64,000 nucleotides of DNA from Hyaloraphidium curvatum SAG 235-1 (GCA_025558095.1 JAIVFI010000004.1:124001-188000), one strand, 5' to 3'. Counted from the first letter of the stretch, positions 6,902 through 49,191 are shown. Numbers and translations are program-made. Notes: generated from the sequence alone by a model not told the origin.

Positions 6902-8518
6902 ATGTCGTTCTCGGCGCCGTCGGTGGACGAGCCCGTCGAGATGGAGGCGGCGACGATGTCCTCGCTGGCGTGGCGCGGGGCGGCGCCGGCGAACGGCGTG
7001 GCGGCCGCCGACTTCTCGCCCGCCGAGCACCTCGCGTTGGCGCCCTTCGTCTTCCCGCCTCCCCGCCCGATCGGCCGCACGCTGCCGCGGAGCGATCCCG
7101 CCTCGGCGCTGCGCGACGCCGCGCCGCTGGGGCGCGCCACGGTGCTGCGCGAGGTCGGCCGCGCATCGCCGCTCCTCGCCGGGGTCCTCCGGTACAATTT
7201 CGCGCTGCAGCCGCTGGCCGAGCGCAACCAGGCCGCCGCAGCCGCGGTGATCCTGCCGGCCGTGGGGCTGTGGGTCGCCACGTGGCAGCTCGCGTGGCCG
7301 CAAGCCGGCACGCGCAACCTGGCCGTGGCCGTCGCCGGCTACGCCGTGCTGTGCATCGTTGGCGGCATCTCGGCGATGCTGGCCATCAACAGTTCCGCCA
7401 AGGTGGCCGCCGAGACGCCGCAGGACGGGCTCGTGAGGCACCCCGCGTCGGGCCTGGTCAGGTACCTCCAGATGGTACGCGCCGGGCCACCGGCGGGCGC
7501 GTCCGAGGAACCTGGCGGGACGCAGCGCCTCTGGCTGGCGGCCCACGACCCTGCAGACAAGCTCGCCTGTCCCTGCCCCCTGCCTGGGTGCTCCGGAGGG
7601 CTCCCTATGCGGGCGGCCTACTACCGCATCTTTGAATACTCAATCATGATCTGCTTCCTCCTCACGCAGTTCTTTTTCCAGGTGGCTATGGTCCTGGTTG
7701 GGCTCCACTCGAGGGATCTTATTAATGCTTTACTCCTCGAGCAGCAATTCACCGCGCTGGCCATCTACTCGCACGATTTCTGGCCCAACCCCTGGATGGC
7801 CGTCTGCGGCGTGCTGTACCTCCTCGCCGTCGTCCTCTTTGCCCTCGCCACCCACTCCGGCCTCACCAGCGGCAACGCTCAGACGGTCCGCCTGGACCTG
7901 CGGCTGCAGGCCCGCGCCGTGCGCATCGTCCTGCGGCAGCTCGTCTCGCGGTTCGATCCCGGCGCGCCAAAGTGCGCCGCCGACCCCGCGGACCCCGGGT
8001 TCCTCGCGGCCGTCGACGCGCTCGTGGCGCTCCGTTCGCGGCTCGCAAGCAGCTGGCAAGACAGGCTCTCCCACCTGTCTGTCGGCCGCCCGGAGCTCTT
8101 TGCCCTCTTCGCCTCGTACCTCGCCGCGTCGGTCGTGAACGCCGCCGGGGCGGGCTGCCTCCCCCTGGGCCACATCCTCGGCATGCTGCACGTGACGGTG
8201 ATCTTCGTCGCCGACCTGTTCTTCGTCGCCGCCAGCAACGCCGAGATCGCCGCGCTGTCGGCGCTGTTCCGGCAGGCCTCGATCGAGGTGCGCGAGGCCT
8301 CGTTGCGGTCGGGCGCCGGGACGGCGAGGGAGGTGGAGGGGCTGCTGCTGGCCTACGCGGACGGGAGGCAGTACCAGTCCCGCTTCGTCGGGTACGTCGT
8401 TTCGGCGGACGTGGCGCGGACCGCCGTCGTGACCTTCGTCACCGTCGCCGTGGCGGCGTACACCATACTGAGGGGGACGGGGCTGTACGTGAGCCCGGGG
8501 AACGTGTGCGGGACGTGA
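6902..8518 (+). CDS. 7-TM membrane protein, gustatory-receptor-like/7TMIC-like family, paralog A (probable in-frame intron 7682-7744)
   Basis: About seven hydrophobic segments, AHDPADKLACPCPLPGC motif, C-terminal RFVGYVVSADVARTAVVTFVTVAVAAYTILRG; aligns with paralogs at 14237 and 47710. Confidence 0.75.
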   Translation: MSFSAPSVDEPVEMEAATMSSLAWRGAAPANGVAAADFSPAEHLALAPFVFPPPRPIGRTLPRSDPASALRDAAPLGRATVLREVGRASPLLAGVLRYNFALQPLAERNQAAAAAVILPAVGLWVATWQLAWPQAGTRNLAVAVAGYAVLCIVGGISAMLAINSSAKVAAETPQDGLVRHPASGLVRYLQMVRAGPPAGASEEPGGTQRLWLAAHDPADKLACPCPLPGCSGGLPMRAAYYRIFEYSIMICFLLTQFFFQVAMVLVGLHSRDLINALLLEQQFTALAIYSHDFWPNPWMAVCGVLYLLAVVLFALATHSGLTSGNAQTVRLDLRLQARAVRIVLRQLVSRFDPGAPKCAADPADPGFLAAVDALVALRSRLASSWQDRLSHLSVGRPELFALFASYLAASVVNAAGAGCLPLGHILGMLHVTVIFVADLFFVAASNAEIAALSALFRQASIEVREASLRSGAGTAREVEGLLLAYADGRQYQSRFVGYVVSADVARTAVVTFVTVAVAAYTILRGTGLYVSPGNVCGT

Positions 8519-8843
8519 CCGCCGGCCCTGGGGGATGAGGGCGGCGATCGCAGTGCGCGGATCAGCCCGTTGGTTGCGACGGTATCGTAGCTTTTCTGTA
8601 TTGAATGCGGTTGACTGACTGATCTGGAATTGAATCTCTCTTATGCTCGGCGAATCCGTCCGAGCCTAGAGCTCAAAGAGCTCGCGACAGCTCAATCGCC
8701 TGCTATCCACGTGCCGCGGATCAGAGACTCTGTCTGTGGTGTTGCACCGAGGCCGCGTGCCGCGTGCACCAGGTGGCCGGTCTGTTCGAGGGTTCGCGAC
8801 TCACGAAGCGTGTTGTCGCCGCAGTGCAATAGATTCCAATGCA

Positions 8844-10532
8844 TCAAACGACCACAATCGCACACAATGCAATCACCGAACCCAGGGCTGCCAAAGCCCG
8901 AGGATCCGCAGCTCGTTTGGCCCCCGAGGGCGCCGACCGCGTCGTTGGGAAGGGACCCGGCGGAAGCCACGTGGATGGAGGGGGCACGAGCGAACCCGTC
9001 GGGACAACATCGGCGGTCGTCGTCGAAGGGCGGATGCCGCAGTCTGGGTCCCAGAGGCCGACACCCGCCGCTATCGCGTCGGCGGCGGTCTTGCACCAGC
9101 CGGCCGAGGTCTGGGTGCAGGTGTAGCCGCCCGTGACGACGCCATCGCCGTATTCCGGTGCCGGCTCGCCGGGGGCGAGGTCGTAGCACTCGCTTTCCAT
9201 GACTGGAGGACCACGGGTCAGCGCTGCGCAGTCCGAACGGCGGCAAAACCCACACCACGAGCAGGCGTTTCCCTGGTACGTCTTTGTCGAGGCGTTGTAG
9301 GTTCCCACGGTGCCCAGGCACATGACGTCCTTGCCGACCGACCGCACCTTGACGTAGTTGGCCTTGTCGGGACAGCTCCGCACGCAGATCCATTCCCCGA
9401 AAGCGCCCGGCGACGTGCCGTTGACGGCCGTGTTGTTGCAGGCCGGCCCTGTGAGGTTGCGGATCACCACGTCGGCCGCCGCGCCGCACCATCCCTCCGT
9501 GGTCTGCGCGCACGTGATCCCCCCCGAGTACCTGAAGCCGGGAGATTCAGGCTGCGGTTCGGGCTCGCCCGGCGCGAGCTCGGTGCAGTTGGCGTCCGAA
9601 TCTGAGCGGATCTCGTCAGCTTCCGGCTTCGCCCGAGCAGCACTGACACAATACCCACACCAGGAGCAGGCGGGACCGCCCGAAAACGGACCCATGCACG
9701 CGACCGTCGTGTGCACCCGGCGCACGCTGACGTAGTTGCCCTTGTCCGCGCAGCTCCGCACGCAGGTCCAGTTGCCGAACCACGGGGGGCCCGGGTCGAA
9801 GACGGCGTCAACGGGGGGGCATCCCGTGACTTTTCGGTCGTTCAGGTACCGGTACGCATCGAGGCACCATCCCGTCCAGTTGCCGGCGAGCCCGGTGCAA
9901 GAGACCGCGTCGCCGTCCGTGAGGAGCCCCGGAGGGTTGTTGATGGGTTCCGTGCAGAAAGGGTCGCCGTAGAGGGTGCACTCGCCCCTTCTGGGTCCCC
10001 GGCAGCCGGTGCTGTCCGATACCTCGATCCCCGGTCCCGAGGAATGGGACAGCGTGCTCACGACGAGCCACTTGCACTTTTCCGAGGGGCTCCGGATGCA
10101 GCTGTGCCCGGCGAGGCATCGGTAGCCCTCGGGAAGCTGCCGCGGGGCGAGGTGGGGAGGGTGTGTCCCGGGGTCCGACGGGCTCCGACGGCCGAGAGCT
10201 CGCCGGCCGTATCCGGTGTAGCTGCCGCCGGCGCACCTGCCGATGCACTGCGAAACGCTGCCGCCGCCGTAGTCGCTGCCTGAGAATTGGCGGCAGACGA
10301 CGAATCCGCTGTTGGGATCGACAAGTTCCGTCTGCCCGGACCACCCGTGGTGGGCGACGGTAGCGGGGATGAGGAGGGCGAAAAGAAGGGGAGGGAGGAC
10401 GGCGAGGGAGGTGGCGGGCCAAGTCCGGTGGGTCCTGGGGAGGGCGGTGCTGTCCCTGGAACTCCGTTGGCCCCGGGACGTCGCGGAGCCCTCCGGCCCC
10501 GCAGGAAGGTCGCAGGCGACACGCTGTGTCAT
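8844..10532 (-). CDS. Secreted/GPI-anchored cysteine-rich repeat protein
   Basis: Hydrophobic N-terminal segment LAVLPPLLFALLIPATVA; two close internal repeats (WxCVRSCxDKxNYVxVR...ACSWCGxC...LAPGEP...TCxQTxxGWC); Thr/Pro stalk and hydrophobic C-terminal tail. Confidence 0.7.
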   Translation of the reverse strand: MTQRVACDLPAGPEGSATSRGQRSSRDSTALPRTHRTWPATSLAVLPPLLFALLIPATVAHHGWSGQTELVDPNSGFVVCRQFSGSDYGGGSVSQCIGRCAGGSYTGYGRRALGRRSPSDPGTHPPHLAPRQLPEGYRCLAGHSCIRSPSEKCKWLVVSTLSHSSGPGIEVSDSTGCRGPRRGECTLYGDPFCTEPINNPPGLLTDGDAVSCTGLAGNWTGWCLDAYRYLNDRKVTGCPPVDAVFDPGPPWFGNWTCVRSCADKGNYVSVRRVHTTVACMGPFSGGPACSWCGYCVSAARAKPEADEIRSDSDANCTELAPGEPEPQPESPGFRYSGGITCAQTTEGWCGAAADVVIRNLTGPACNNTAVNGTSPGAFGEWICVRSCPDKANYVKVRSVGKDVMCLGTVGTYNASTKTYQGNACSWCGFCRRSDCAALTRGPPVMESECYDLAPGEPAPEYGDGVVTGGYTCTQTSAGWCKTAADAIAAGVGLWDPDCGIRPSTTTADVVPTGSLVPPPSTWLPPGPFPTTRSAPSGAKRAADPRALAALGSVIALCAIVVV

Positions 10533-11184
10533 TGAGACACGGTCGGATATTGTTCTGAACGGGTGGAAGGGGGTTTTGATCGCTGCAGTTGTCGAGTGAC
10601 TCCACGCTGCGCCACCCCGCCCGGGCCAGCCGCCAAGTTCACGAACGAACGAGAAGGTGTCCCGGATTCGGAGAAACGCGATTTCTACGCAACAGCTCAG
10701 TAAAGTTGTTCCAAGCAGACATCGCGGGATCAGCAACGCGGCTCCCAAACCGATTTCCCGTCTGCCGTCTTTCCTTCGGTCTCCGCTCGGGATGATGCGT
10801 TCTCAGGCAAGGCCTCTGTCTGCGATCGGGCGCGGCCGGTCGGCACTGCGCGGGGCGACGAGACTCCGGCAATCGGCAACATCTGACTCTCCGACTTCTA
10901 AGCGCCCTGGTTGCGCGTCACTGCACCCGCATGCAATGCGGCAAAGCAGAATGCGTGCCGACGTCCCATGCTAGTTGCAGCGTTGGCCCGTCCTCCGGTT
11001 AAAACACAAGCTCTCAATGAGCACTACTGAGTGGGATGCTTTTGTTGCTAGACGTTGAAAGTGGTGTTGTAGAAGTGGGCGGTCCGCGTGGTGGCCGTCT
11101 GTTTGGGCGCGCCCACGGCGCGACACCCGCAACCGCCGGATCGTCGCGCCGCTCCCGGGTCTCTGCCCGGCCCCCGGCAACGCC

Positions 11185-13732
11185 ATGTCGCGCAAATCGT
11201 CCTTCTCTTCCGGCGCGCCCCCCGCAGAGGGCCGCACGGCGTCGCTCATGCGCAAACTCAGCCAGTCGTTCCGCGGGCGGCCTGCGCCCGAGAGCGGCCC
11301 GCCGTCGCCGTCCCTCCGCGGGGACGCCGGTCCCGCCCCGCCGCCGCACAGGCCGCTGCTGCGGAGCGCGTCGCTGGCGGGGGGCGGGCTGCGTTCGGCC
11401 GGCGCGTCCCCGGCGGCCCCGCCGCGCCTGCCGCCGCTCCCCGAGAGCACAAACACGCGCGCCTCGCCGCAGCGGGAGAACCTGCAGCGGGACGTCTTTG
11501 CCGCGAGGCCCAGGAGCGCGGTGCCGGCTCCCGCGGCGCACGCCAGGCACTCCGTCGCGAGGGACGAGGAACCAGACGCCGCGCTGGTCAGGTCGCTCAC
11601 CGAGCTCGACCTCGACGTCGAAATCGACGCCTTTGCCGCGGCGTCCAAGCCCCCCGCACCGCGCGGCGCCACCCAGTACCGCTCCGACTCGACGCTGGCC
11701 CCCGCAGGCTCGTCGCACTCCCTGCTGCCCCCGGCCCTGTCGGCACAGTCCTCCTCGGCGTCGCTGGCGGACTGGGCCGACCCGGCGATGAAGCGCATGA
11801 GCTTCCTGGCCGAGAGCGTGCCCGGCTCGCCCAGGGTCGTGCCCCGCCCGCGGCCCCTGTCGATCGTCAGCACCGCCAGCATGCCCGTGCAGGCCGCCGC
11901 ACCTCAGCACCTGGCCCCGGCTGCCACCCCGGCCCGCCTCCGCCGCGGCTCCGCCCTAGCCTCTCCCGCCGACGCGACCCGCCCCCCGCTCCCGCACCAG
12001 GCCTCCTCCTCCCTCTCCCTGGTCCCCAGCCTCGCCGCCTCGTACGACGCCTCCCCCCGCACCTCCCCGCGCCTCCCCGCCTCCCCCTCGGGTCACTCCC
12101 TCGCCTCGATCGGCTCCCGCCCCCGCGACCGCGCGTCGGCGCTCGCGGGGATCCGCAGCCTCAAGAGGATGGAGCCACGGAGGGACTGGAAGGCCACGGC
12201 GCCCGACTACGTGAGGCAGATCATGCCGCCGGCGGAGCAGCAGAGGCAGGAGATCCTGAACGAGCTGGTCTACTCGGAGCGCAAGTACGTCCGCGACCTG
12301 GCATGCCTCTACGCGGTGAGCTTCGCCCCCCCCCCCCCCCCCGCCCCCCCAGTCTTGTAACATCCCCCCGCCTGACCTACCGCTCCCCCGGCCCCCTGTC
12401 GACGCAGTACCACATCGAGCCCCTCGCCGCGCAGGACATCCTGCCCCCAGGCTCCATCTCGGCCCTCTTCTGCCTCCCCCACCTCGACCGCATCCGCGAC
12501 ACCCACGAGCAGCTCCTCCTCGCCCTCGACGACCGCCGCCGCGAGTCCTCCGTGCGGGGCACGCAGTGGTTCCGCCTCTTCTGCGACCTCGTCGCGCGCG
12601 CGGCGGGGGCGGCGGGGAGCTACGCGTGCTACGACGCCACCCTTGAGGGCAGGATGAGGTGGTTGGAGGAGGAGAGGAAGGCGAACGGGGGTCTGGTGGT
12701 GAGGATGGCGGACATGGCGTCCAGGGTGGGGGAGGGGGAGGGGGGGATGGAGGGGCTGATGGAGGTGCCGGGGGCGAGGCTGGTGGCGTACAGGAACTTC
12801 CTGCTGGTGGGTCCCTCCGTCGTTCGGGGCACGTTCCGGCGCGGCTGACGGCGGTGCAGCGCCTCCTGCCGGTGACGCCCGAAGACCACGCCGACCGCGC
12901 CGCGGCAGTGCTCGCGCTGGAGGAGATCGAGGCCGCGCTGGCGTGGGTGGACAGGAAGGCGCGGTGGCTGCAGGCCAAGAACGCGGCGGCGGGGATGTTC
13001 GCTTCGGTGAGGGAGTGCAGGGTGCTGCCGCGGGAGTACTTTGGCTTCGCGCCCGGGACGGTGGGTCGCCCTGCCGTGCTGCGCCCCGTGGTTGGGAGCT
13101 GATTGGTTCTCGGACGGCAGGAGGTCCAGTGGGATTCCCTCGTCTCTGCGCGCCCGAACCACGGCCTGTTCCCCGACCCCTCGCAGCACGACCTCCTCTT
13201 TACGGTCGACGCCCAGCTGCTCCCCTTCTCCGACGCCCCCCGCCCCCGCGCGCGGCTGGTCCCGCAGCAGGCGAGGAAGCCGTTCCCCGCGCGGCTGGCG
13301 CTGATGACCGGCGGCGCGTTCGTCCTGCTGAGCGGCGGGGAAGGGGGATGGGACCGGATGCTGGGTGCGACGGCGACGGGGGTGGAGGATCTGGGTGAAG
13401 GGGGGATGCTGCTGCGGGCCGTCGGGGGTTGGGGGTCGGGGAAGGGGTGGCCCGGTTTCGCGCTGCGCCTGCGGCCCGCCCAGGACGGCCCGAGGGAGCG
13501 CGGCGAGCTCCTTCGCGCGCTGGCCGAGTGCGCGTCGAGCCCCGCGGACGCGGCGGTGCGGGAGAGGAGGGCGCTGGCGGAGGGGGTGCGGGAGTGGGAC
13601 GACTACGGGCTCAGCGAGGCGGGTTTCGCGGATGCGGTGCCGCATGGGTGGCCGGTTGTTTCGCCGAGGACGGGGAGGAGGGGTGGGGGGTTGAGGAGGG
13701 CGGTGAGCGGGGTGTTTGGGCTGGATGCGTAG
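11185..13732 (+). CDS. Dbl-homology (RhoGEF) domain protein with long Ser/Pro-rich N-terminus, three introns
   Basis: EQQRQEILNELVYSERKYVRDL (DH conserved region 1), later EVPGARLVAY...LL..TPEDHAD. Introns near 12316-12407, 12807-12859 and 13061-13120. Confidence 0.8.
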
Positions 13733-14236
13733 AAGGGTGGTGGATGGCAGGTCAGGGGTTGGAGATGGATGTGTTCCGGTCGGTCGTTTGGTTCCGGGCA
13801 TGATGCGCTAGCTACGTACGAATACAGCGTCGGCACGACAGCGCATCTCTTCGGCAGTTGGGCTTGCATACAGCCACATCCGGGACGGGTTTCGCATGAG
13901 CTCGCACACGAATCCAAACGAGCTCCGCCCGGAAGCAAAGACGAGACGGACAAGGAAATCAGAAATGCCTGCTTCGGGCCACATTTCCCCGGGCGCCAGC
14001 TCCACCTGGGACCCGGCATTGAGCAGGTCGCAGGGATGCGGCGGGTCCCGCACGGGTTTGCGCACGGATCCGAGCGAGGAACGGTAAGAAAGTGGGCGGG
14101 GAGTCGAGCCTGGTGTGCTACAATTGCTCTATTGGCCGATTTAAGGGCGGACGTCATCCTGATCATCAGGACGCCGCCCTGGGGGACGGTTCGACGGAAG
14201 GTTCGGAGCCACCACTTGCCACTTCCACCGCACCGC

Positions 14237-15760
14237 ATGGCACCGGAGGCCGGGAAGCAACTCTTCAGCGCGAGAGAATGGCTGGCTCTATTCCCTTACC
14301 CCGTACCGCCAGCCCCGCGGCGGTGGAAGGGCGCGCCGGCGGCCCCCGCGGACCTCCGCGAGGCCGAGCCGCTGTCGGCCCGCTCCGTGCTGGACCACCT
14401 GCGGCCAAAGGGACGCTGGCTGTATTTTGCCCTGTTCCGCTACAAGCTCGCGTACCCGGACGTGTACACTTTCTTCGTTTCGTTCTTTCCGCTCGGTGCT
14501 GGCCATCGGGTGCGTGCTCGCCATCGGTGACGGGGAATTCCCCGTACGCGCGGCCGTCATAGGCACGTTTGCCGCGTGGCTGCCGCTCCTCGTGGTCCTT
14601 GCCGTGTACTGCCAGTTCTGGTGGAAGGGGAGGCTGTTCGCCGTTCCCAAGGAGAGGCACTTCGTCGGGGGCCTTGCCGCAGTTGCCGCCACGGTCCGGT
14701 ACGACCAGCTCGTGGCCGAGGATCCCGATTCACCGCTTCTCGCCCATGATGACGCCCACGGCAAGAAAACGTGCCCGTGCCCGAGGCCGGGTTGCGCCGA
14801 GCGGCTCCTCGCCCTGGATGCGGTGATGCGGCTCGGCGACTGGGTGTTTTTTGCCGGCTCGCAGATCAGCCTGCTCGTGCTCACGTTCTGGACGCCCTTT
14901 GTGACGTACGCGGGGACCTTCTGGAGGACCCCGTACATGGCTTTTGTCGGCATTCTAGCCGGTAAGTTGCGTGTTCCCGCGATATCGCGCCTCCGCCAGG
15001 CTGATTGATTCGACTTGCTTACCCAGTTTCGCTCGAGCTCTTTGCGGACGGCCTGGTCGTTGGCTGCCTCCGTTCCACCGTCATCCCCGTCTCTGCCAGC
15101 CTCGCGCTCGAAACGGCCATGCGGGAGCGCGCCGTCGGCGCCGCCCTCTCCGATCTACTGGACCGCGTGCACTCCGAGGCGGAATCACAGGCCGATCTCG
15201 CCCCGGCCCCTCCCGCGGACCCGGATCCGTACATGCACCTCCACGGCGCCCTGGTCGCCGCATGGGGCGTGAGGTTCGGCAACCTGTACATTATCACCCG
15301 CGCCCTCTTCCTGCTCGTTGCGATAGCCCTCGTCGTGGCGTTCGTGCTCAACGCCGCGGCGGGCTCCTGCGTCGCGGCATGGCAGCTCGGCTGGCTCATC
15401 CACACGCTCTGCTTTGCGGCCGTGGAGCTCAGCATCTACGCCTCGGCCAACTCGCAAATCACGGCCGTGCTGGGGCTCTACGCCGACGCGCGCGGGGACC
15501 TGCGGGCGCTGGCGGCGCGCACGGATCCCTCCCGCACGGCGCTGCTGGCGCGGCTGTCGGCCCACGACCGCGTGCTGAAGTGGTACACGGACGAGGCAGA
15601 AGGTGCCAGGGCCAAGATGTTCGGCTTTCCGATCACCGGGGGGGTCATTCGCGCTCTGCTGGTGACGCTGTTTACCATCGGGGTCGGCCTGTGGACCGTG
15701 CTGCGTGGCAACGCCATCTTCCTGACCGTGGAAACCTTCTGTCCCGCCGTGAAGGGCTGA
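14237..15760 (+). CDS. 7-TM GR-like/7TMIC-like family, paralog B (frameshift or cryptic intron at 14496-14562; intron 14962-15026)
   Basis: LAHDDAHGKKTCPCPRPGC motif, FWRTPYMA, ASANSQI and RAKMFGFPITGGVIRALLVTLFTIGVGLWTVLRG. Confidence 0.7.
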
Positions 15761-15839
15761 GCACTTGATTGCCGCCATGTTCCTCGCTCGTAGTCCAATA
15801 CACTCAACGCATCAAATCCGCGCGGCGTCCGTTTGCTCT

Positions 15840-16884
15840 CTACCTCCTCTTGGTAGTCGTCCGCTTCCTCTTGGTCGTCGTCTTCTTCACCGTCTTCTTG
15901 GTCGTCGTCTTCCGCTTCGAGGTCGTCTTTTTGGCCGCCGCCTTCTTCGACGTGGTCTTGGCTGGCCCGTCGATCTGCCTCTGGATGAATGCCGCCGAGT
16001 ACGAAGTGCGGGCAAAGAACGAGTCGCTGGCGAAGGCGGCATCGCGCGCACAGCCCAAAACCGGGATCGCGAACAAGCCGACCACCGTGGGCGTCCCCCC
16101 GATGCTCACGACGGCCAGCGCCCCCCCATCACCGGTGCAGGCCCCGGCCCTCGCTCCCGTGACGCAGAGGCATTCCGAGACCAGGCACGCTTCCACCATG
16201 TCCCTGGGCTTGCACGTGGAGTAGACGCCGATCTTGCCGGTGTAGCGCTGCAGGTTCTGCGACAGACGGATCAGCGGCGCGGGGTCACAGCGCGCGGGAT
16301 GCCGACTCACCTGCGGCCTGACGGTGGTCGGCTCGATCTGGGTGTGCCCGAATCCCAGGACGGTCACGTCGGCGCCGGCCGCCGGCACGCCCGCGGCCCT
16401 GTTCCACGCGACGGTGACAATCGGCTTGCCGCCATCGAAGACGACGGAGCCCAGGGTGACGATGCCGAGGTGGCTGTTGGGATCGGGGTTCACCGATGCG
16501 ATGTTGAACACGGTGCCGCCCTGGGCCTGGGTGGTCGCGTTGCGCACGGCGTGGTACAGCGCCGCGCGGCCCTTGTCGAGCTGTATCGCGCACTCGAAAT
16601 CGGTGAGGACCTTGGTGGGCGCGATCAGGGCGCCTGGCGCGGGGCGACGTGAGATCCGAGGCCGCGGCCACCCGCGGGGGACGCCCACCTGTGCAGGCGA
16701 GGATCTGGCCGTCGCTTTCGCGGAAGAAGCGCACGACCCAAGGGTACGCGGACAGATCGGTCACGTTCTCCGTCGCACCGAGGAGCCGGGGGGCGAGGCT
16801 GCGCGGGGCGGCGAGCGGCGACGCGTGGCCGGGCACGGCCAGGGCTGTGGCGAGGAGGAGGGCGAACGCGGCGGCGGAGGCCAT
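15840..16884 (-). CDS. Secreted trypsin-fold (S1) protease homolog, catalytically dead, Lys/Thr-rich tail (introns 16634-16688, 16257-16310)
   Basis: Signal peptide, PRLLGA activation-like site, YPWVV, CTGALIAPTKVLTDFEC, VLGFGHT, ACTGDGGA; tail KTTSKKAAAKKTTSKRKTTTKK. Confidence 0.8.
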
Positions 16885-37551: not shown

Positions 37552-37901
37552 CGGGCGTGATGCGGCCCCGTGGGCGCGTGGGACGGCTGGCGGATTTTAG
37601 GACCTACTCCCCCCGCGTCTGTTCAGGCTCGAAGGAAGCCCCAACTGGACAGTTTCCGATCTGCTGATTACGCTTATGGGGAACTTCCACTTGCAGATGA
37701 CTTCAAAGTGGCTTGAAACTCATGGCCGAACGGTGAAAACCTTAGAAAGGAAGAAGGTAGAGCAAATCTCTTCGACCAGCATGCTAAGGCAAATTGTATC
37801 TACAACGACTGTTTCCGACGTCCATGTGACGAGATTCGTGTGACGAGTTCGCGGCCAACATTGGTCCGGTCTCCAACGGGCTGCAAGTGGGCATGCCTCC
37901 T

Positions 37902-38958: not shown

Positions 38959-41900
38959 ATGGCGTCCCCCGTGGAGCCCGGGGCGGTGGTCGACGCCGGC
39001 CCTGGTCATGAAAGCGATTCGGACGGGACCCACTCCACCGCCGGCAACGAGGCCTCCGACGCCGAAGTGCCGGCCGCCGCGAAGGCAGAGGAGGTGCCGG
39101 CTGCCGTGAAGGACGAAGTAATCCACGAGCTGGAGCAGGAGATTCCCGGGAACCCTGTGGTTCTGGCGGCGGCAGAGGCCGGGGTCAAATCGGTGGGTCA
39201 CGTTCTTCCGCCGAACCCCTGTCCGGTCTAAAGGACTTTGGGCTGACCCGGTCTGCTCGGAACTCTGCAGGAGGGTTTCTTTGCGAGGTTCCGGAGAGGG
39301 AAGGGCGGCCCGCCGAAGGAAAAGCCCGAGACCGTGTCCTTCATATCCCTATTCCGCTTCGGGACGACTTCGGACAGGATGCTGACGATTTTGGGCCTGT
39401 GCTCCGCCCTCGCGTCGGGCGCCGCCATGCCCTACATGTCTGTCATCATGGGGGACGTGACCAACGCCATCATCTCGTTCCAGTACAACCCGCCCGTGCC
39501 CATCCCCCCCGGCCGCCCGGGGTCGGCCGAGTACCTGGAATCGGAAATCGCCCGCGGCGCTATCGGATTCACCATCCTCGGTTGCGTCTCCTTCGTTACC
39601 GCGTACATCATGTACGCGTCGCTCCAGATTTCCGCCATCCGGCAGACGAAGCGGATGCGGGACGCCTATTTCTTGGCGATTTTGAGACAGGACGTGGGCT
39701 GGCATGACCAGGGGATGACCGGGGAGCTGACGGCCCGGCTGACGGCGGACGTGAACCTGGTGCAGGAGGGCATCGGGGAGAAGCTCGGCGTCATCGTGCA
39801 GAGTCTCGGCGGCTTCCTCACGGGCTTCATCAGTGCGTGAAGCGCTTCAGTCGTATTCACCTTGTGGAGCTCACCAACCGTGCCCGCAGTTGCCTTTACG
39901 CGCGGATGGCAGCTCTCTTTGATTCTCCTCTGCGTGTTCCCGCTTATTGGTGTCGCGGGCCGCCTGATGGCCGGCCAGCTCACGAAGCGCACCAAGCTCG
40001 CGCAAGACGCCTACGGCGATGCCGGCGGCGTTGCAGAGCAGGCCATTGGCTCCGTGCGGACGGTCCAGGCCTTTTCTGGCGAGCAGCGGGAGGTCGACCG
40101 CTACGAGGCGAAGATCAAGGTCGGGTTGGACCACGGGATCAAGATCGGGTTCATCACCGGAGTCGGCATCGGCAGCATTTTCGCCATCATGTTCTGCGTC
40201 TACGGGCTCGCGTTCTGGTACGGCTCCACCCTCATTCTGGCTGGGACGTACAATGGCGGGCAGGTGCTCAACGTCTTTTTCGGTGAGCCTTCTCCGATGC
40301 TAGTGTTCCATGCCCGACGTTCATCGCGCAAACTCCAGCTCTCATGATTGGTGTCTTTTCAATCCTCGGCATGGCACCGAACATCTCCGCCCTCTACACC
40401 GCCCAGGGCGCCGCGGTCAAGATCCACAAGACCGTGGACCGCAAGAGCCCCATCGATCCCCTCGATCCCTCGGGCACCAAGCCCTCGCCCATCGTCGGCA
40501 ACATCTCCTTCTCCAACGTCAACTTCCGCTACCCCAGCCGCCCCGACGTCCAGGTTCTCGAGAACTTCTCCTTGGACATCAAGGCCGGGACTAAAGTAGC
40601 CCTCGTGGGCAGTTCCGGGTCTGGCAAATCCACCATCGTGAAGCTCCTCGAGCGCTTCTACGATCCGGAGAGCGGTTCGATCACCCTAGACTCGAACGAG
40701 CTGCGCTCGATCAACGTCCGTTACTTGCGGCAGCAGTTCGGCATCGTCTCGCAGGTGAGAGAGGAATCAAAGGGCCAGCTGGACTGTCTTCTAACCCCGA
40801 CGCCGCTACGATCCCAGGAACCGACGCTGTTCGACTGTACGATCAGGGAGAACGTGCTCCTCGGCCTCCCCGACGCCTCCCTCCACTCCAAGGAGGCGCT
40901 GGACGAGCTCGTCCACCGCGCGATCAAGATCGCCAACGCCGACTTTGTGTACAAGCTGCCCGAGGGGCTCGACTCGCAGGTCGGCGAGCGCGGTATACAG
41001 GTCAGCGGAGGGCAGAAGCAGCGCATCGCCATTGCCCGCGCCATCATCAGCAACCCGCCTATACTGCTCCTCGACGAGGCGACAGCTGCCCTTGAGTACG
41101 TTCTCCGGTCTCTTTGACCATCTCCGACTTTCTGATCATCTTTTGCCACGCAGCACCGCCTCCGAACGCCTTGTTCAGCGAGCGCTTGACGAGGCCGCCA
41201 AGGGCCGCACTTCGATTGTCGTTGCGCACCGTCTTTCGACGATCCGGGACAGCAACGCCATCTATGTCATGTCGCGCGGCAAGATCGTCGAGTCGGGCAC
41301 GCACGAGGAACTGGTGGCTCGCGGTGGTGCCTATGCGGACCTGGTCAAGGCTCAGGAGATCCGCACGTCGGCGGAGGTCCACGACGAAGAGGACCCGGAG
41401 GAGGAAGAGCTGCCCCAGCAGCTCATGCCGCCCGCCAACCCCTTGCGGCGCGCGTCGACAGCTCCCATTTCGATAAAGGACCGGCGGGTCTCATCGAACG
41501 TTCTTTCGGACACCGACACCGAGACGGCGATTCCCATGGATCCTCTGACGGATGTGAACGTGGCCCCTGGTGTCACGACGGTCAAGTCGATGACCGCTTC
41601 GTCGATTGCCTCGGCCGACCCTCCACCAGCAGAGGAGAAAAAGGGCATCTTGGCGCTGGGCGACCTTTTCAAAAAGGACCCGAAGAGTGGCAACGTGTGG
41701 TTGCGGGTCGTGAAGCTCAACAAGCCCGAAACGAAGTACTTGCTCATTGGGACGGCCGGCGCCGCTGGATCCGGTGCCGTCATGCCGCTGTGGGGTCTCA
41801 TCTTTTCGAGCATGCTCACGACGTTCGGCAAGGCACGGTTCTGACTTGCTTGGAGTTCCTTTTTGTGCTAACTAGTGTTTCCAGACCGGACAAGAGCTGC

Positions 41901-43877
41901 AGGATGGAGCCCGGTTCTGGGCCCTGATGTTCCTCTGCCTCGGCATCTTCCAAGTAGGTTTGCCTGGCTGGCTTGCGAGCCTTCATTGACTGGCCCACAG
42001 TTCATCACCTTCTTCTTAAACATCTCCTTCTTCACCATGTCCGGCGAACTCCTCACCATGCGCATGAGGCTCATGTGCTACAAGTCGATCCTCCGGCAAA
42101 ACATCGGCTGGTTCGACGACGAGAAGCAGAGCACCGGCACGCTCACCGCCAAGCTCGCCGACGACGCCACCCAGGTCAAGGGGCTGTTTGGGCAGCTCCT
42201 GGGCTCGCTGGTGCAGAGCCTGGTCACGACCGCCGTCGGCATCGGGCTCGCGATGTGGTATGGTTGGAAGCTGGCCTTCATCATCCTCGCGACCATCCCC
42301 ATCGTCGCCTTTGCGGGGTACCTGCAATTCAAGACCCAGGTTGGGCTCATAATGCGTTGCGCGGCAACCATTGCTGACGCCAAATGCTTTTGTAGCACAA
42401 GTTTGGTCAGGTTTCCAAGACTTCTTACGAGGAGAGCAACACCGTTCCGACGGAAGCGATCTCGAACGTTCGCACGGTCGCGACGATCACGAAAGAAGAG
42501 GTTCGTCGGTACCACAATGCACTCGCGCAAGTGCTAAACCCTGATCCCCCTAGCACTTCTTCGAGGAATACAAGCGCGAGATGCTTCCCAGCTACGACAA
42601 GGCCATCCACGGCGTCCTTGTCTCGTCGCTTGGCCAAGGCTTCAGCAACGGCGCCCGCATGTTCGTCAACGCGTTGGCCTACTGGGTCGGCGCAAAGGTG
42701 AGCTTTCGTTTTGTCGCTCGATGTCGAAGCTGATTGCAAGCGGCGCAGTTCATGATTTCGGGAGAGTATGACGCCCAGAGCGTGCAGGGTGTCATCTTCA
42801 CCATCCTTTTCATGGTGAGTAGTCCAAAGCCCTGTGGTGCTGCTTCGAGTTCTCATGCGGTCTTTTAGGCCATGGGTCTCGCTCAGGCAACTCAAAACGC
42901 CCCGAGCATCACCAAGGCCAAGCTCGCCGCCATCTCCATTTTCCAGATCGTCGACCGCACCCCCGAGATCGACGCCACGAACCCCTCCGGCCTCTCGCCG
43001 ACCTCGGTCAAGGGCCAGGTCAACTTCGAGTCCGTGGAGTTTGCCTACCCGACCCGGCCGCTGGAGATGATCCTCAAGGGGTTGGACCTGGAGGCGAAGC
43101 CGGGACAGACGGTTGCCCTTGTGGGACCCAGGTGAGGCCGGCCGGAGCTGATGTTTCCAAATACTTGCTCACCTATTGCTGCAGTGGTTGCGGCAAATCG
43201 ACGACGGTGGGGCTCATCGAACGCTTCTACGACGTCGGCGCCGGGAGCGTGCGGGTGGAGTCGACCGACGTCCGCGAGTGGAACCTCCAAAGCCTACGGC
43301 ATTCTCTGGCCATAGTGTCTCAAGAACCTATTGTGTTCGAGGGAACAATCGCCGAAAACATCGCCTACGGCCTCCCGGAGCGTGCGGCGACCATGGACGA
43401 GATCGTTGCCGCGGCCAAGCTCGCCAACATCCACACCACCGTCGAGTCCCTGCCCAAGGGCTACGAGACGTCGGTCGGCGAGGGCGGAGCGCTCCTTAGC
43501 GGAGGCCAGAAACAGCGCGTTGCGATCGCGCGGGCTCTGGTGCGGCAGCCCAAGATCCTGTTGTTGGACGAGGCGACGGCCGCTTTGGAGTGGGTCCCCG
43601 TCGGTGCAAGCACGGTCCTTGTTTTTCTGACTTGCCTTCCCGCAGTTCGCAATCGGAAAAGGTCGTGCAGGCCGCGCTGGATGCCGCGGCGGCGGGACGG
43701 ACGACGCTCTCGATCGCCCACCGGCTATCGACGATCCAGGGGGCGGACATGATCCTCGTCTTCCAGGCCGGCAAGATCGTGGAGCGCGGCAAGCACATGG
43801 AGCTGTACAACCAGAAGGGCTTCTATTACGAGCTCGTAGTGCAGCAGCAGCTCGGCACTTCCAAGGACCCAAGGTGA
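38959..43877 (+). CDS. Full-size ABCB (MDR/P-glycoprotein-like) transporter, many introns
   Basis: Two TMD-NBD halves: [32 protein letters not shown]; then GP|[29 protein letters not shown]. Confidence 0.95.
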
Positions 43878-43998
43878 CATTTAGATTGACGATGGCAACT
43901 CTGACGCGTGTTGAGTGTATTGAATGGCGAACATCGATGATTTACTGCAACGGCGATCGACATCCATACTCACGCGAGACGCACATCGAATCCTGGAG

Positions 43999-44778
43999 TT
44001 ACACCCTCCCGAACCTCAAACCGTCTAGCTCGAGCTCGCCTCCGCGAAGCAAGAACTGTGCCCTCCTCTCACCTCCGTCCTCCGGCCGGAACTCGATCCA
44101 GCCTTCGTCCACAACCCTCCAGCTCCCACTCTCGGCTTCGCTGCGCACGCTGCTCCCGCCCAGCCCCGGGACGTTGATCGAGACGAGCGACTCGGCCCGC
44201 GACTCGTAGCTCCCATCCCCCGAGAGCATGAGCCTGGTCTCGGACGAGTATCCGCCCGAGCCGTCGTAGCCAGTGCCGCCGCGGTAGCTGTCCGAGGTCC
44301 ACCAGCGTCCGACCAGGGCGGTCGGATTGGGTGGGGGTTGGCGTGCTGAAACCACCCCGGCGCGCGCGAGGAGCGAGTTCACGTCCGCATCGGTGATGGT
44401 CACGGCCGGGCTCTTGCCCCGCTTTCGCTTCGCCGGCTTTTCCGGGGCAGGTGGTCTGTCGGGAGACGCCGACGGCCCAGACGCGTTCGAGACTCCTCGC
44501 TTCAGCACAGTGCGCCCTCCAAACAGCCCTCCATCAACCTCCAGAGCGTCCTCTCCAGCATATGCGTACTCGAACTCGTGCGCAGAGCCGTCGTCGGCCT
44601 TCAATCGGAGGATCCCCGTGCCTGGCGCCGACTCTTCCGCCGCGAACGAGCCCCGCGATTCGGACGGGTCGCGCAGCGCGTAGGTGCCCGAAAGCGCGTC
44701 GGATGCGGCCGGGACGAGCTCCAGGGTGCCGAGCTTCGGCATGCCGGGGACACGGAACGTCCAGCGGCCCGCAAGCAT
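43999..44778 (-). CDS. Uncharacterised protein with two small beta-rich (lipocalin-like, GxW-starting) domains
   Basis: 259 aa intronless ORF; LAGRWTF and LVGRWWT...LSGDGSYE...ESGSWRV; basic linker KPAKRKRGK. Confidence 0.55.
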   Translation of the reverse strand: MLAGRWTFRVPGMPKLGTLELVPAASDALSGTYALRDPSESRGSFAAEESAPGTGILRLKADDGSAHEFEYAYAGEDALEVDGGLFGGRTVLKRGVSNASGPSASPDRPPAPEKPAKRKRGKSPAVTITDADVNSLLARAGVVSARQPPPNPTALVGRWWTSDSYRGGTGYDGSGGYSSETRLMLSGDGSYESRAESLVSINVPGLGGSSVRSEAESGSWRVVDEGWIEFRPEDGGERRAQFLLRGGELELDGLRFGRV

Positions 44779-44954
44779 GTTGACAGATTGTCTCCCTCGA
44801 TCAGATCACAATCGATCACACCCGCCGCGCGTGTGTTGTGGGCGGCTCCTCACGCACCGTCACCGCTCGACCCCCGGCTCAAGCTCGAGCGAAGCAGCTG
44901 CCGAGCACCGGACTCGCTTTGGAACAGTGTGCGTTCCGCGAAAATCGGGCCGCG

Positions 44955-46559
44955 ATGGCGCAGTTTGCTCGGACCGAAGAGGAGGCCGCGGCCGCGATTC
45001 GGGCGGGACGCCGCGTGGTACGCCCGGACGCCATCATGTGCATGGAGGACTGCGAGCTGTGGATCAAGACAGCGTGTCTGGCCTGCAAGCGCGCCGACGT
45101 TCCGCTGCGCCGATGCGCCGCCTGCCAGACCGCTCCTTACTGCAGTAAGGAGTGCCAGCGGAGCCACTGGCCCTCGCACCGCGATGCTTGCGGCGTTCTC
45201 GTACACCCTTTCGACTTTGCATGGGCCGTCATCGTCGTGGGAGCCAACCTGAGCCTGGGCTTCACGCACGGAACCGCCGGACGGCCCAAGTCGCAGGCTA
45301 CGACCGTTTGCCCCGCGCTCAACGTGATCTGCGACTACGAAGGTGTCCCCGGGGTTCTGCTGGTTTCGCTCATCAACGCGGAGACGGAGCTGACGAGGCA
45401 GACGTTGGACGCTGTTTCGGGGCTCGGGCTCGAATTCATTCCAGACGCCTACAACAGCAACGCCTCTTTGATCTCGAACGAAGGTCTCACGTTGCAGCAG
45501 GTCACTCCGGGTCTCTTGCTGGACAATGCACGACGCGATCCAAAGTTTCTCACCCTGAGGGAAGCCACTTTGTCGCGGGAAGGGAAGGTCGTACTCGAGC
45601 TCGCCAAGGACCTCGGGATTCAGGCGCAAGTCGTCGTTACGCCCTGGGGTTCCAGCGGAAACGTGGCCATCCCGGCCCATCCTACGCAAGTCTCGGATTC
45701 AAAGGCCACGGCCGCGACCAAAGTCAAGCGCATCGGCGAGGGTCATGTCAAACCCAGAGACGGAGGAGACCATCTGCATCGGGACGTCCTGGCCGCGCCC
45801 GTCCTCACGCCCGAGGCATTGGATCCGCGCAACCGTGCTTCCCCCCTCTTCTTCCGCCGCCCTCTTCCGGCTCGTCCTTATGTGCCGCACTCGATCGAGG
45901 GCCGCGTCACCACCGACTCCCACCACCCCGGCCCCTTCTTTGCCCTCCCGGGCGACACCCTCACGTCCTTCATGCTCTGCACCGCCCTCCCAGCCCCTTC
46001 GCCGAAACCGCTGGGCCTCGCCCCGGGCTCCCGGGCCCAGTTCGTGGAGGTCAACGCCAAAGGGTTGGAGGTTCGGCACCCTTCCGCCTTCCAACATGCG
46101 GGGCTTTTTGAAGGCCGCGGGGCCGCGATGCAGAGATTGCACCGATTCTTTGGGGCCGGAAGGATGGAGGTGGGAGCCGGGCAGGCGGGCGATCATGGAG
46201 GAGCGGGATCGGAGGTTCGGCGTGAAGACGTGCGGGAGGAACCACGACAGCCATCTTTTCATTTCGATGTCGGCGTTCTAGCTCGGTTTCCGACTTCAGC
46301 TCCGGAGCGCCGCGGCCATAAGCGTTCGGCTCAAGAAACAGTGTGTATTCGCCTTCCGAGGAATTTGACGTTACTCCTGCACCGAGTAGTTGGTCTGCGT
46401 CGAGAGATGCCTGTGATAGAGATCTCACCAGAAGGACCGCGTCACGGCGTCGATCTCGATCGGCCGCTTGCCTCCCAACTCAGCACCGCAACCCTCTACC
46501 GCGCTCGAGTTCCCCATCTTCGGTCGCCAAAATGGCCCCGGCCGGTGCTGCACCAGTGA
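44955..46559 (+). CDS. MYND zinc-finger protein (3' end uncertain)
   Basis: CLACKRADVPLRRCAACQTAPYCSKECQRSHWPSHRDAC is a canonical MYND finger. Confidence 0.75.
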   Translation: MAQFARTEEEAAAAIRAGRRVVRPDAIMCMEDCELWIKTACLACKRADVPLRRCAACQTAPYCSKECQRSHWPSHRDACGVLVHPFDFAWAVIVVGANLSLGFTHGTAGRPKSQATTVCPALNVICDYEGVPGVLLVSLINAETELTRQTLDAVSGLGLEFIPDAYNSNASLISNEGLTLQQVTPGLLLDNARRDPKFLTLREATLSREGKVVLELAKDLGIQAQVVVTPWGSSGNVAIPAHPTQVSDSKATAATKVKRIGEGHVKPRDGGDHLHRDVLAAPVLTPEALDPRNRASPLFFRRPLPARPYVPHSIEGRVTTDSHHPGPFFALPGDTLTSFMLCTALPAPSPKPLGLAPGSRAQFVEVNAKGLEVRHPSAFQHAGLFEGRGAAMQRLHRFFGAGRMEVGAGQAGDHGGAGSEVRREDVREEPRQPSFHFDVGVLARFPTSAPERRGHKRSAQETVCIRLPRNLTLLLHRVVGLRREMPVIEISPEGPRHGVDLDRPLASQLSTATLYRARVPHLRSPKWPRPVLHQ

Positions 46560-47490
46560 AGCACAGGACGAACCTGACGCGCAAAGTGTGCCTCGTGACC
46601 GGTGCTGCGAGCGGATTGTTGGGATCCCGTCTGAGCCGCACGAGGTCCGCCTAACGCGTTCCGTTGCCAGCGGGGAGGCCGTTTCGCGACAGCTTGCTTC
46701 CAGGGTATGGTGCGGATTACGTTTGGGCCGAGGAGCTTCCTGACGCGCCACCTGCGCATCGCTTCCGCCGCAGCACCTTCACATTGTCTCCCGCGGGCGA
46801 TTCCTCGACCCAGGGTGCCATTGTCGTCCTTGCGGACCGCGATGCGGAGCGCGGAACGAAGCTTTCTGCGGAGCTGGACGAGAAGTACGCGGGCGAGCTG
46901 GACATTGGCTTCTTTCCCTTCGTTCAATGCGATTTGTCGACGCCGGCCGGCGTCAAGGCGGCGTTCGACGAGGCCATCAAGCGGTTCGGGACTCTCGACA
47001 TCCGCCGACCCTTCCCGTCTACGTTGGTTGCCCCCTGCCGCAACAGCCTTGCTGTGCTCACACGTTTTCGTTCTCTCCGGGCCGATCACCGTACACAATG
47101 TCCATTTGCTCCATTACTCGTCGCCGATTCAAGGCCGCCACCAAGGCCGCCGTCTACCACCTCGGTCGCTCCCTGGGCACCCTGTATCCCAACATCCACG
47201 TCTTCACCATCTGCCCCGGCGCCGTGCAGACCAACCTCAAGGGCGCCACCAAGGTGCCCGGCGCCGGCGAGTTCAACCAATCCAAGGCGATCCAGCGCGG
47301 CCTGGCGATCATGCAGACCGACGACGTCGCGGATGCGATGATTTACTGCGTAGACCACGCGGATGAGCTGCCGAGGGGCGCGGCGCTGACGGTGTCGCCG
47401 CCGGGGATCGCGCTGCTCGAGACCGAGACCAAGGTGGGGACCAAGATCAAGGACGTGCGGAAGCGGGAGCAGGGGAAGCAGAAGCTGTAG
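46532..47490 (+). pseudogene. Short-chain dehydrogenase/reductase with an internal deletion and frameshift
   Basis: KVCLVTGAASG(F)GEA, VVLADRD, FVQCD, FGTLDI are followed directly, out of frame, by PPTLPVY|AATKAAV (YxxxK). The NNAG and Ser-strand segment is absent. Confidence 0.65.
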
Positions 47491-47709
47491 CACTGGTCAG
47501 CGATGATGAGGCAGCCAGGTCAATCACGGCTTTAGCAACATCTACGAGCCGTTTCCGGTGGAGTAGCGCGTGTTGGGCACAGCAGCTTGGCCAATGCGGC
47601 ACGAATGGATACGGAAGGCCATCGTTTGTCCCCCCCGTGACAAGCGGCCCATCGAACCCAAAGCACCGGCGCGGCGCGCGCAAAAGCCACCGACACACAT
47701 ACCAACGCG

Positions 47710-49191
47710 TCACGCGATCGGACACGCCGACTGCACCGTCACCCACACTCCCGCCCCCCTCAGGATCCCGTACAACCCCACTCCGACCGTCAGCGCCGTG
47801 ACGAGCAAGCCCCTGAGCACGCCGTAGTCCACCGGGAACCCAAACACCCTTGCGCGCTCCGACTCCGCTGCGGCCCGGAACCCGGCCAGCACCCGTGCGT
47901 TGGCGCGCAGCCGCGCGGCCTCCGGGTGGCCCGGCACGCGGGCGAGGAGGAGGTCCAGCTCGTTGCGGGCGCGGGAGTAGAGCGCGGCGGTGCGCACCGC
48001 GCCGGCGCTGGCGGCGGCAACGCTGGCAAGGAAGCGGAGCAGGAGACCGGCGAGGATGCCGAAGGTCGAAGCGAGGAGGTAGGCGGGGATGCAGCCCGAG
48101 CCGAGCACGGTGATGGCCATGGCTAGAATGCCGAAGCTCATGAGGCTGACGATCGCGGTTACCGTGGTCGTCGTTGCACCGCTCAGCGCACGCCACGAGG
48201 GCACGAGGGCGAGGTGCACCTCGACGTACGGCTCGACTGCCGGCCAGGTGACAGGCTTGAAGGCGGATTCGGAACACCGCGAGAGGAACGCAGAGAGGGC
48301 GCGGACGGCTGCACGGCTTTCCAGCCTTGGCTGGAGCCCTTGCAAGGCGACGTCCTTTGCGACCGAATCCAGGACCATGCTGCAGGAAATGCAGGTGTTT
48401 GCTGCAAGCACGTATGCCGCAAGTGCCGCTCTCCACGGCGAAGTCCACGTCTGCTGCCCGAACGACACGACAGCCGTCCAGAACATCAGCGGCCCGTAAA
48501 CAAAGGCGTCCCCAAGAAGGTTGAGCAGCAGCACGGCCCACTGCAGCACCGCGGAGGTCCCAGCAATCGGGCCTGCGCAGGACGGCGCCGGGCAGGGACA
48601 GAGGGGATTCGATTCCTCGTGCGCGACGAGGGATCCCGCGGCGTCCCCGGACGGTTCCGGATCCGATCCGTCCGTAGCCGCCGCGGCCAGGCACAGCTGC
48701 TTCCAACGTGCAAACTGGGCGTAAGGATGCCGGTCCAGAACGGCGCGGGCAGCCTCGGCGGCTTGGGTAATTGGTGGCGTCGACACGGCGAAGCTGATTT
48801 CGGTGACGAAGAATGCGGCGGCTCCTGCCGCCAGTCCCCTAGTCGAGAACGACCCCGAGTCCGCCGCCAAAGGCCAGAAAGTGACCAGCATCAGCGCGGC
48901 CCGGGGGACGGAATAAAGCGCCGCGCGCTCCCAGAACCGGCCGTTAAGCGGCGGGTTGTGCCTGCTCAGGCGCAGCAAGGCGCGGTGCGCCAGCGATCCC
49001 GAAAACGCGCGGAAGAGATCCGTCCACGTCAACGGCGACGTCTTCCTGGCGTCCACTCCGGGGTCGTGCTCGGCCGCGCCGTCGGGCGAGTCGCGGGAGA
49101 GATTCGGGGAGGGGGACGTCGGGGCGGGGAGAAGGCAAAGCCACTCCGCGCCCGAGAGGCCGCCCGTCGCCTCTGGCGTTGAAAAATCCAC
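47710..49191 (-). CDS. 7-TM GR-like/7TMIC-like family, paralog C
   Basis: VAHEESNPLCPCPAPSC, FWTAVVSFGQQTWTSPWRA, RARVFGFPVDYGVLRGLLVTALTVGVGLYGILRG, ends SACPIA. The ORF track opens it at a non-ATG codon, so the true start is uncertain. Confidence 0.75.
   Translation of the reverse strand: MDFSTPEATGGLSGAEWLCLLPAPTSPSPNLSRDSPDGAAEHDPGVDARKTSPLTWTDLFRAFSGSLAHRALLRLSRHNPPLNGRFWERAALYSVPRAALMLVTFWPLAADSGSFSTRGLAAGAAAFFVTEISFAVSTPPITQAAEAARAVLDRHPYAQFARWKQLCLAAAATDGSDPEPSGDAAGSLVAHEESNPLCPCPAPSCAGPIAGTSAVLQWAVLLLNLLGDAFVYGPLMFWTAVVSFGQQTWTSPWRAALAAYVLAANTCISCSMVLDSVAKDVALQGLQPRLESRAAVRALSAFLSRCSESAFKPVTWPAVEPYVEVHLALVPSWRALSGATTTTVTAIVSLMSFGILAMAITVLGSGCIPAYLLASTFGILAGLLLRFLASVAAASAGAVRTAALYSRARNELDLLLARVPGHPEAARLRANARVLAGFRAAAESERARVFGFPVDYGVLRGLLVTALTVGVGLYGILRGAGVWVTVQSACPIA

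Follow-up and report, generated by a model that had tools for sequence, protein, structure and literature searches.

A family of about 400 seven-helix proteins with the predicted fold of insect chemoreceptors in the unicellular fungus Hyaloraphidium curvatum

Seven-transmembrane ion channels (7TMICs) form a superfamily that takes in the odorant and gustatory receptors (ORs and GRs) of insects, the gustatory receptor-like proteins (GRLs) of animals and protists, and the DUF3537 proteins of plants (PMC7746228; 10.1101/2023.08.30.555482). The hallmarks of the fold are an N-terminus inside and a C-terminus outside the cell, short outer loops, long transmembrane helices (TM) 4 to 6, a split TM7, a conserved anchor and TM7b, and variable N-terminal helices (10.1101/2023.08.30.555482). 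Before a screen published in 2023, fewer than 50 7TMIC proteins had been recorded outside animals and plants, with six at most in any one unicellular species (PMC7746228; 10.1101/2023.08.30.555482). The only fungal members that we found described are GRLs present as single copies in two species of Spizellomyces (PMC7746228), and the 2023 screen, which counts only Chytridiomycota and Blastocladiomycota as 'Fungi', does not mention Hyaloraphidium (10.1101/2023.08.30.555482). We found no literature linking Hyaloraphidium to 7TMICs, and no report of a large 7TMIC repertoire outside animals. In this paper we analyse three paralogous genes in a 64-kb stretch of the genome of Hyaloraphidium curvatum (contig C4:124001-188000; hereafter the window, meaning that whole stretch), a non-flagellated member of the Monoblepharidomycota (PMC8371127) with a genome of 31.9 Mb in 55 contigs. 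We put at about 0.8 the probability that they belong to a family of some 400 members with the 7TMIC fold, present in H. curvatum and in at least one uncultured organism, which would serve as an array of receptor-channels.

The three genes lie at 6902-8518 on the plus strand (copy 1), 14237-15760 on the plus strand (copy 2) and 47710-49191 on the minus strand (copy 3). A reading made from the sequence alone (the sequence-only reading) had proposed three divergent paralogs at these positions, and both BLASTP and a six-frame scan with a hidden Markov model (HMM) of the family bear this out. Copies 1 and 3 are 25% identical over their full length (E 1e-19), the last exon of copy 2 is 33% identical to copy 3 (E 2e-24), and the HMM detects no further copy or fragment in any of the window's six frames. 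The C-terminal signature that the same reading had ascribed to all three is visible in an alignment of C-termini. The local density of 3 per 64 kb is mildly above the genome-wide value of about 0.8 per 64 kb. The trio does not form a tandem cluster, since the nearest relative of each member sits on another contig and the patristic distances among the three (3.1-3.3) are like those of random family pairs.

The family hydropathy profile and the secondary structure of AlphaFold2 (AF2) models, assigned with DSSP, concur on seven membrane helices. The copy 3 model, built from a 106-sequence alignment, has a predicted local distance difference test score (pLDDT) of 94.2 and a predicted template modelling score (pTM) of 0.91, and its helices are TM1 at residues 86-112, TM2 at 117-150, TM3 at 209-236, TM4 at 252-275, TM5 at about 345-365, TM6 at 370-392 and TM7b at 456-479. 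About seven TM segments with long loops after TM2 and TM4 had been expected from the sequence; hydropathy and AF2 agree, and the loop after TM6 proves to be long as well. Four segments are long in the 106 aligned members, at 61-88 amino acids (aa): the N-terminal one and the loops that follow TM2, TM4 and TM6 (these inner loops average 61-80 aa). Together they have a lysine plus arginine total of 31.7, as against 1.9 for the remaining three loops and the C-terminal tail, which measure 8-18 aa. By the positive-inside rule this charge bias predicts that the N-terminus is inside and the C-terminus outside, the opposite of G protein-coupled receptors (GPCRs).

The models show further features of the fold. 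The full helices of TM5 (321-365, 45 residues) and TM6 (370-418, 49 residues) of copy 3 extend deep into the cytosol, and TM4 is prolonged by a helix at 286-308; the copy 1 model (pLDDT 84.9, pTM 0.86) has matching long helices at 365-417 and 422-470. TM7 is split in both. In copy 3, TM7a (425-444) is followed by a non-helical hinge (445-455) of the form R-x-F-G-F-P with a near-invariant G451, and then by TM7b (together at 47755-47919, minus strand); in copy 1, TM7a (473-486) and TM7b (502-525) flank the corresponding hinge (8318-8476, plus strand). TM7b is the best-conserved helix of the family, with a conservation score of 0.62, followed by the hinge (0.54), the cytoplasmic part of TM6 (0.45) and the membrane parts of TM1-6 (0.26-0.34). 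Its consensus is R-x4-T-x2-T-V-G-V-G-L-[FWY]-x-[IL]-L-R-G, in which near-invariant arginines (R460 and R478) flank the helix and T465 and T468 lie within it; by these residues the helix departs from the pores of ORs and GRs. The first 85 or so residues are also conserved (EWLxLxP, DP..R...PLT) and contain a short hydrophobic helix at 14-20 (the EWLxLxP segment), conserved and confidently modelled, which may in the model be the counterpart of the re-entrant TM0 of ORs.

Compared exhaustively by VIA-align with 48,161 representative chains of the Protein Data Bank (PDB), the copy 3 model has eight insect ORs and GRs as its top eight matches (Z 14.0-10.3, 307-347 residues, root-mean-square deviation 5.5-6.0), from AaegOR10 (Z 14.0, 347 residues) down to BmGr9 (Z 10.3). 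Residues 53-478 align to whole OR/GR chains, and the next match is a partial one of 110 residues at Z 8.2. The copy 1 model, built separately, has ORs and GRs in its top seven places (Z 12.2-10.3, 298-357 residues aligned). All eight OR/GR representatives of the library thus head the list for copy 3; seven head that for copy 1, in which the eighth, Gr64a, is tenth. In a Foldseek search of the PDB with copy 3, the first seven places are filled by BmGr9, AgamOR28, AaegOR10 and Gr64a at probabilities of 0.87-0.99. Among ESM Atlas neighbours only echinoderm and cnidarian clusters without a name exceed a template modelling score (TM-score) of 0.5 (0.58/0.67 and 0.59/0.71); by language-model features, the neighbours with a name are DUF3537, at 0.94, and 7tm_7, with ten clusters at 0.91. 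The structural match to the Orco/GR fold foreseen from the sequence was therefore found with two separate models, and the proposal that the three copies are 7TMIC homologs is supported by predicted fold and language-model features, not by sequence profiles.

Six positions, H191, C198, C200, C205, C367 and C490 in copy 3 numbering, are invariant or nearly so in the 106 sequences. Four of them form a motif in intracellular loop 1, H-x(6-8)-C-x-C-x4-C, which takes the form C-P-C-P-x3-C in the window copies: H215-x7-C223-P-C225-P-x3-C230 in copy 1 (7544-7591, plus strand; pattern match at C4:131568), H191-x6-C198-P-C200-P-x3-C205 in copy 3 (48577-48621, minus strand; C4:172577), both in invariant alignment columns, and the corresponding residues of copy 2 at 14745-14795 (plus strand; C4:138772). 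The loop is confidently modelled and lacks regular secondary structure, and its His-Cys3 set, on the predicted cytosolic side, would most simply be a zinc site of the zinc-knuckle kind. The other two positions are C367, within the four-residue turn between TM5 and TM6 (outer loop 3), and C490, in the short outer tail; in the copy 3 model, strands 367-369 of the turn and 483-485 of the tail come together in a small sheet. Because both cysteines are predicted to lie outside, they likely form a disulfide there, by which the C-terminus would be fastened to the TM5-TM6 loop.

A search of the fungus's own genome gave 776 first-look candidates, and all 82 that were scored are family members, lying on most contigs. 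Most of the scored loci stay open without a break for about 500 codons and the genes are mostly intronless; about 12 of some 78 scored loci are split or carry a stop. An exhaustive search of 1.84 billion representatives of clusters at 50% identity found 397 at E<=1e-3, of which 327 reach E<=1e-10. Of 29 clusters sampled, 27 are from H. curvatum (26 named 'hypothetical protein' and one the fragment of copy 1, P0134) and two are environmental. Three NCBI proteins recorded under H. curvatum (P0002, P0003 and P0010) have loci in this genome that encode them without a difference. The DNA pattern for CPCPxxxC occurs at 203 sites in the genome, versus 50 for the reversed control; since 44 of 106 aligned members (41.5%) have the exact CPCPxxxC, about 370 copies are expected, or about 430 if the 35% rate among 150 listed representatives is used. 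From this motif count and the representative library, we estimate the family at about 370-430 members, which agrees with the large receptor-like family that the sequence-only reading had supposed. Close pairs and small groups of members, in contrast to the three unrelated copies of the window, occur elsewhere in the genome (C39:391484-395120, C7:67466-74719, C26:548283-561784 and C27:100877-134184).

Median pairwise identity within the family is 27%. Long purifying selection is indicated because most frames remain open despite this divergence and because the six Cys/His positions are invariant; the family is old, dispersed and under selection, and is no recent burst or repeat.

The two environmental clusters come from metagenomes (JGI 3300043314 and 3300050339, ENA ERZ28593542 and a Logan assembly). 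Two metagenome contigs with family members, L031 and L032, have a GC content of 54-55%, as against 67.6% in the window, and their DNA has no match to the H. curvatum genome except for 147 nt at 71% identity; for these reasons we conclude that at least one other organism has the family. Their proteins bear all family motifs and are 50-57% identical to particular paralogs (L024/P0016; L007/L005/L001). For the cluster of P0140/P0152 the best paralog is 50-54% identical and the next 41-46%, and these identities suggest that this subfamily, at least, predates the split between H. curvatum and the other organism. The members lie at L031:129-1205, next to an SNF2-like gene, and at L032:1810-2340, where two small called genes upstream are possibly exons of the same gene. 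The environmental members came from cluster look-ups; scanning metagenome contigs with degenerate patterns turned up no relative. Word-indexed homolog searches gave two paralogs, and have no bearing on taxonomic range, as Ala/Leu-rich words swamp the candidates.

By analogy with the solved ORs and GRs, the subunits would tetramerise through the cytoplasmic anchor of TM4-6 and TM7a, and TM7b would line a central pore. A prediction of a two-copy complex, run without the family alignment, left the fold itself uncertain and speaks neither for nor against such assembly. The variable outer halves of TM1-6 would form a ligand pocket specific to each paralog. The family would then be an array of ligand-gated channels, each with its own tuning, through which a planktonic cell that cannot move would sense the chemicals dissolved around it. 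We speculate that, as there is no flagellum, the output of such channels would more likely regulate uptake, growth or development than steer swimming. If conserved arginines ring the proposed pore mouth, they might give a different ion selectivity. Tentatively, and at slightly less than even odds, we suggest that a non-flagellated unicell independently built some 400 insect-type 7TM channels, with a novel metal-binding His-Cys3 module in the cytosol and a disulfide clamp outside, and that the family is older than the split from at least one uncultured relative.

Several observations weigh against a 7TMIC receptor-channel array. No Pfam match was found for the window proteins, and none even at E<=10 for 72 family members, including to 7tm_7 (PF08395), 7tm_6 (PF02949), Trehalose_recp (PF06151) and DUF3537 (PF12056); a search of PDB sequences with the family profile found no OR or GR. 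The TM7 motif of GRs, (T/S)Yhhhhh(Q/K/E)(F/L/M), is not recognisable in the family C-termini, where TM7b has at most the aromatic position in common with it, and the motif is regarded as diagnostic, not definitive (PMC7746228). Against the solved structures the Foldseek E-values are only 0.05-0.2 and the TM-scores 0.26-0.42, with deviations of 5-6 A, and the comparison tool itself cautions that, for helical bundles, arrangement alone can give a Z as high as about 13. A near-invariant arginine (R478) at TM7b's outer end sets the family apart from the pores of ORs and GRs, and, H. curvatum being described as non-flagellated (PMC8371127), chemotaxis of the classical kind would be no obvious use of the family.

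The last of these points bears on an alternative that is unlikely, if one to be taken seriously, namely that the proteins are true 7TMIC homologs with another role, such as recognition of self and non-self or at the cell surface, the sensing of light or temperature, known from some animal GRs, or a non-channel role like that of the poorly understood PHTF or DUF3537 proteins. The functions of plant DUF3537 proteins and protist GRLs are unknown (PMC7746228), H. curvatum does not move (PMC8371127), and intracellular partners are hinted at by the His-Cys3 module in the cytosol and by the conserved N-terminal 85 aa. On the other hand, hundreds of deeply diverged paralogs in which TM1-6 vary strongly and TM7b and the anchor are conserved are typical of ligand-diversified repertoires such as the insect ORs (10.1101/2023.08.30.555482), and the receptor-channel array is preferred here.

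The weak sequence and structure scores would be expected if an unrelated seven-helix bundle had converged on the OR/GR shape, since there is no HMM-level similarity, TM-scores are 0.34-0.42, and Z below about 13 calls for caution with helical proteins. We consider such convergence improbable. The match to ORs and GRs appears real because the solved 7TMIC representatives rank first with collinear, full-length coverage, whereas unrelated matches cover half or less; because the hallmarks of the superfamily are shared (N-terminus inside, short outer loops, long TM4-6 with the extended TM5 and TM6, split TM7); and because the conservation gradient is as described for 7TMICs (10.1101/2023.08.30.555482). 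Language-model features, which are drawn from sequence only, also retrieve DUF3537 and 7tm_7.

It is highly improbable that the copies are decaying relics or a gene carried by a repeat: two of the three window copies are defective and the split or stop-bearing loci noted above exist, but mostly open frames of about 500 codons persist at 27% median identity with six invariant Cys/His positions, copies are transcribed (see below), and members 50-57% identical to particular paralogs are kept in another organism. A GPCR-type receptor or a transporter, for which seven predicted helices and nothing else speak, can practically be discounted, as the charge bias places the N-terminus inside, neither kind of protein stands near the top or above Z 8 with full coverage among the 48,161 chains for copies 1 and 3, and transporters, far from the OR/GR ranks, reach Foldseek probabilities of <=0.16 and TM-scores of <=0.14.

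Copy 1 is intact, with an ATG start and 538 aa encoded in a single exon (open reading frame (ORF) at 6902-8518, plus strand; HMM E 6e-118), and is the most divergent of the three. Its public annotation consists of P0134 only, the last 111 aa (residues 428-538), which begins at an internal Met, and the full-length 538-aa protein was not found in a collection of 15 billion proteins. Truncated gene models seem to be widespread for this family. Listed family representatives are often short (5th percentile 341 aa). Beside copy 1 an ORF listing shows a long Cys-rich ORF at 8844-10748 (minus strand) with no evident link to the family.

The sequence-only reading had called one copy possibly disrupted, which holds and was an understatement: copy 2 is frameshifted and copy 3 has no in-frame ATG, and such defects fit birth-and-death turnover. 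The pieces of copy 2 were searched one by one. An N-terminal coding piece in frame 2 begins with an ATG at 14237 (14237-14467, plus strand) and matches profile positions 8-85; a middle piece in frame 0 (14487-14961), which contains the H/CPCPxxxC motif, matches positions 97-259; and the last exon (15027-15760), with TM7b at about 15638-15709, matches positions 272-498. Between the first two pieces, the ends of the two HMM matches and the sequence place the change from frame 2 to frame 0 in a 19-nt bracket inside TM1 (14468-14486). An intron at this point is ruled out, as family-homologous sequence continues in both frames with a gap of 19 nt; the bracket is too short for an intron, so the junction is a frameshift. 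Between the middle piece and the last exon lies an intron of 65 nt (14962-15026, GT..AG, phase 1), and the RNA run X1 has a contig in which the two exons are joined (14960->15026).

Copy 2 is transcribed and spliced. The only RNA contig over its 5' half matches the genome exactly from 14471 on, ending 3 nt inside the bracket, and further RNA contigs cover 15179-15470 and 15520-15761 of the last exon. The frame change may be fixed in the genome, an allelic difference being the alternative, and RNA verifies the bracket except for its first 3 nt. The contig could stop at 14471 because coverage is low, because a transcript starts internally, or because an allelic indel broke the contig. RNA contig depth is absent over 13911-14351. 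We regard copy 2 as an expressed frameshifted copy, probably a pseudogene. Its contig depth is 5.6, as against 51 for the well-expressed neighbouring gene at 12000-13341 (plus strand), from which three introns (12315-12406, 12806-12858 and 13060-13119, the last two with GT..AG ends) are removed in the RNA contig; because of this removal run X1 is taken to be RNA. In the metagenome runs X3 and X4 the genes were not found, and only GC-rich fragments of 19-33 nt are common with the region. A trypsin-like ORF with a Lys/Thr-rich tail is listed beside copy 2 at 15840-16688 (minus strand), with no evident link to the family.

Copy 3 is an uninterrupted frame of 493 codons (47710-49191, minus strand; HMM E 3e-141), open from stop to stop as far as 49239. 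No in-frame ATG stands before TM1 at the family start position, and the ORF tool proposes a GTG as the start. The closest ATG, at 49211-49209, is out of frame and stands shortly before a T5 run. Homology to the paralog P0001 runs in frame to the start codon of P0001, where the codon of copy 3 is not ATG (49192-49239). The ATG could be missing because the start was lost, because of an indel or through a mistake in the assembly. Copy 3 is probably transcribed, because run X1 contains 89% of the sampled words of its region (a share of 0.89).

Some 400 genes of the 7TMIC fold in the 32-Mb genome of a culturable unicellular fungus would mean that such expansions need no nervous system. If the members are indeed differently tuned ligand-gated channels, large combinatorial arrays of this fold would have evolved without neurons or motility. 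The gene set is compact and mostly intronless, and offers a means of probing what 7TMICs outside animals sense and conduct. Surveys blind to structure miss the family because it is invisible to Pfam and partly mis-annotated. The superfamily is known; as far as the literature we found goes, this is a new sequence family, set apart by its extra modules and by a repertoire of animal-scale size.

Among known systems the resemblance is to the ORs and GRs of insects (Class-A 7TMICs such as BmGr9, 8vc1/8vc2; AaegOR10, 8v02; MhOR5, 7lic; Gr43a, 8jm9; Gr64a, 8jme), whose helix order and packing are alike at Z 10-14 over about 300-350 residues. Shared with them are the N-inside, C-outside topology, the short outer loops, the long cytoplasmic TM5 and TM6, the split TM7, a C-terminal helix that is the most conserved, and a large, very divergent repertoire with pseudogenes. 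The H. curvatum family differs in having no detectable sequence similarity to them and no TM7 TY...QF motif, and in having the His-Cys3 set in an intracellular loop 1 of about 60 aa, the invariant cysteine pair, the conserved N-terminal region of about 85 aa and a near-invariant arginine at both ends of TM7b; its genes are mostly intronless and its host is a unicellular fungus without neurons. The chytrid proteins SpunGRL1 and SpalGRL1 are likewise fungal, GR-like by topology and predicted structure, and have a weak TM7 motif or none (PMC7746228), but they are single-copy and were found by GRL similarity, whereas the H. curvatum family numbers about 400 and lies beyond the GR, GRL and DUF3537 profiles; the two are set apart by description. 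Plant DUF3537 proteins (PF12056) are the best named language-model neighbour and share the 7TMIC topology, the want of a TM7 motif and intracellular loops longer than those of insect receptors, but the 72 members searched have no PF12056 match, and plants have 4-12 copies (PMC7746228). The PHTF-like Class-B 7TMICs (10.1101/2023.08.30.555482) share the 7TMIC core and an enlarged intracellular loop 1, but in H. curvatum this loop is only about 60 aa long and carries the Cys/His motif.

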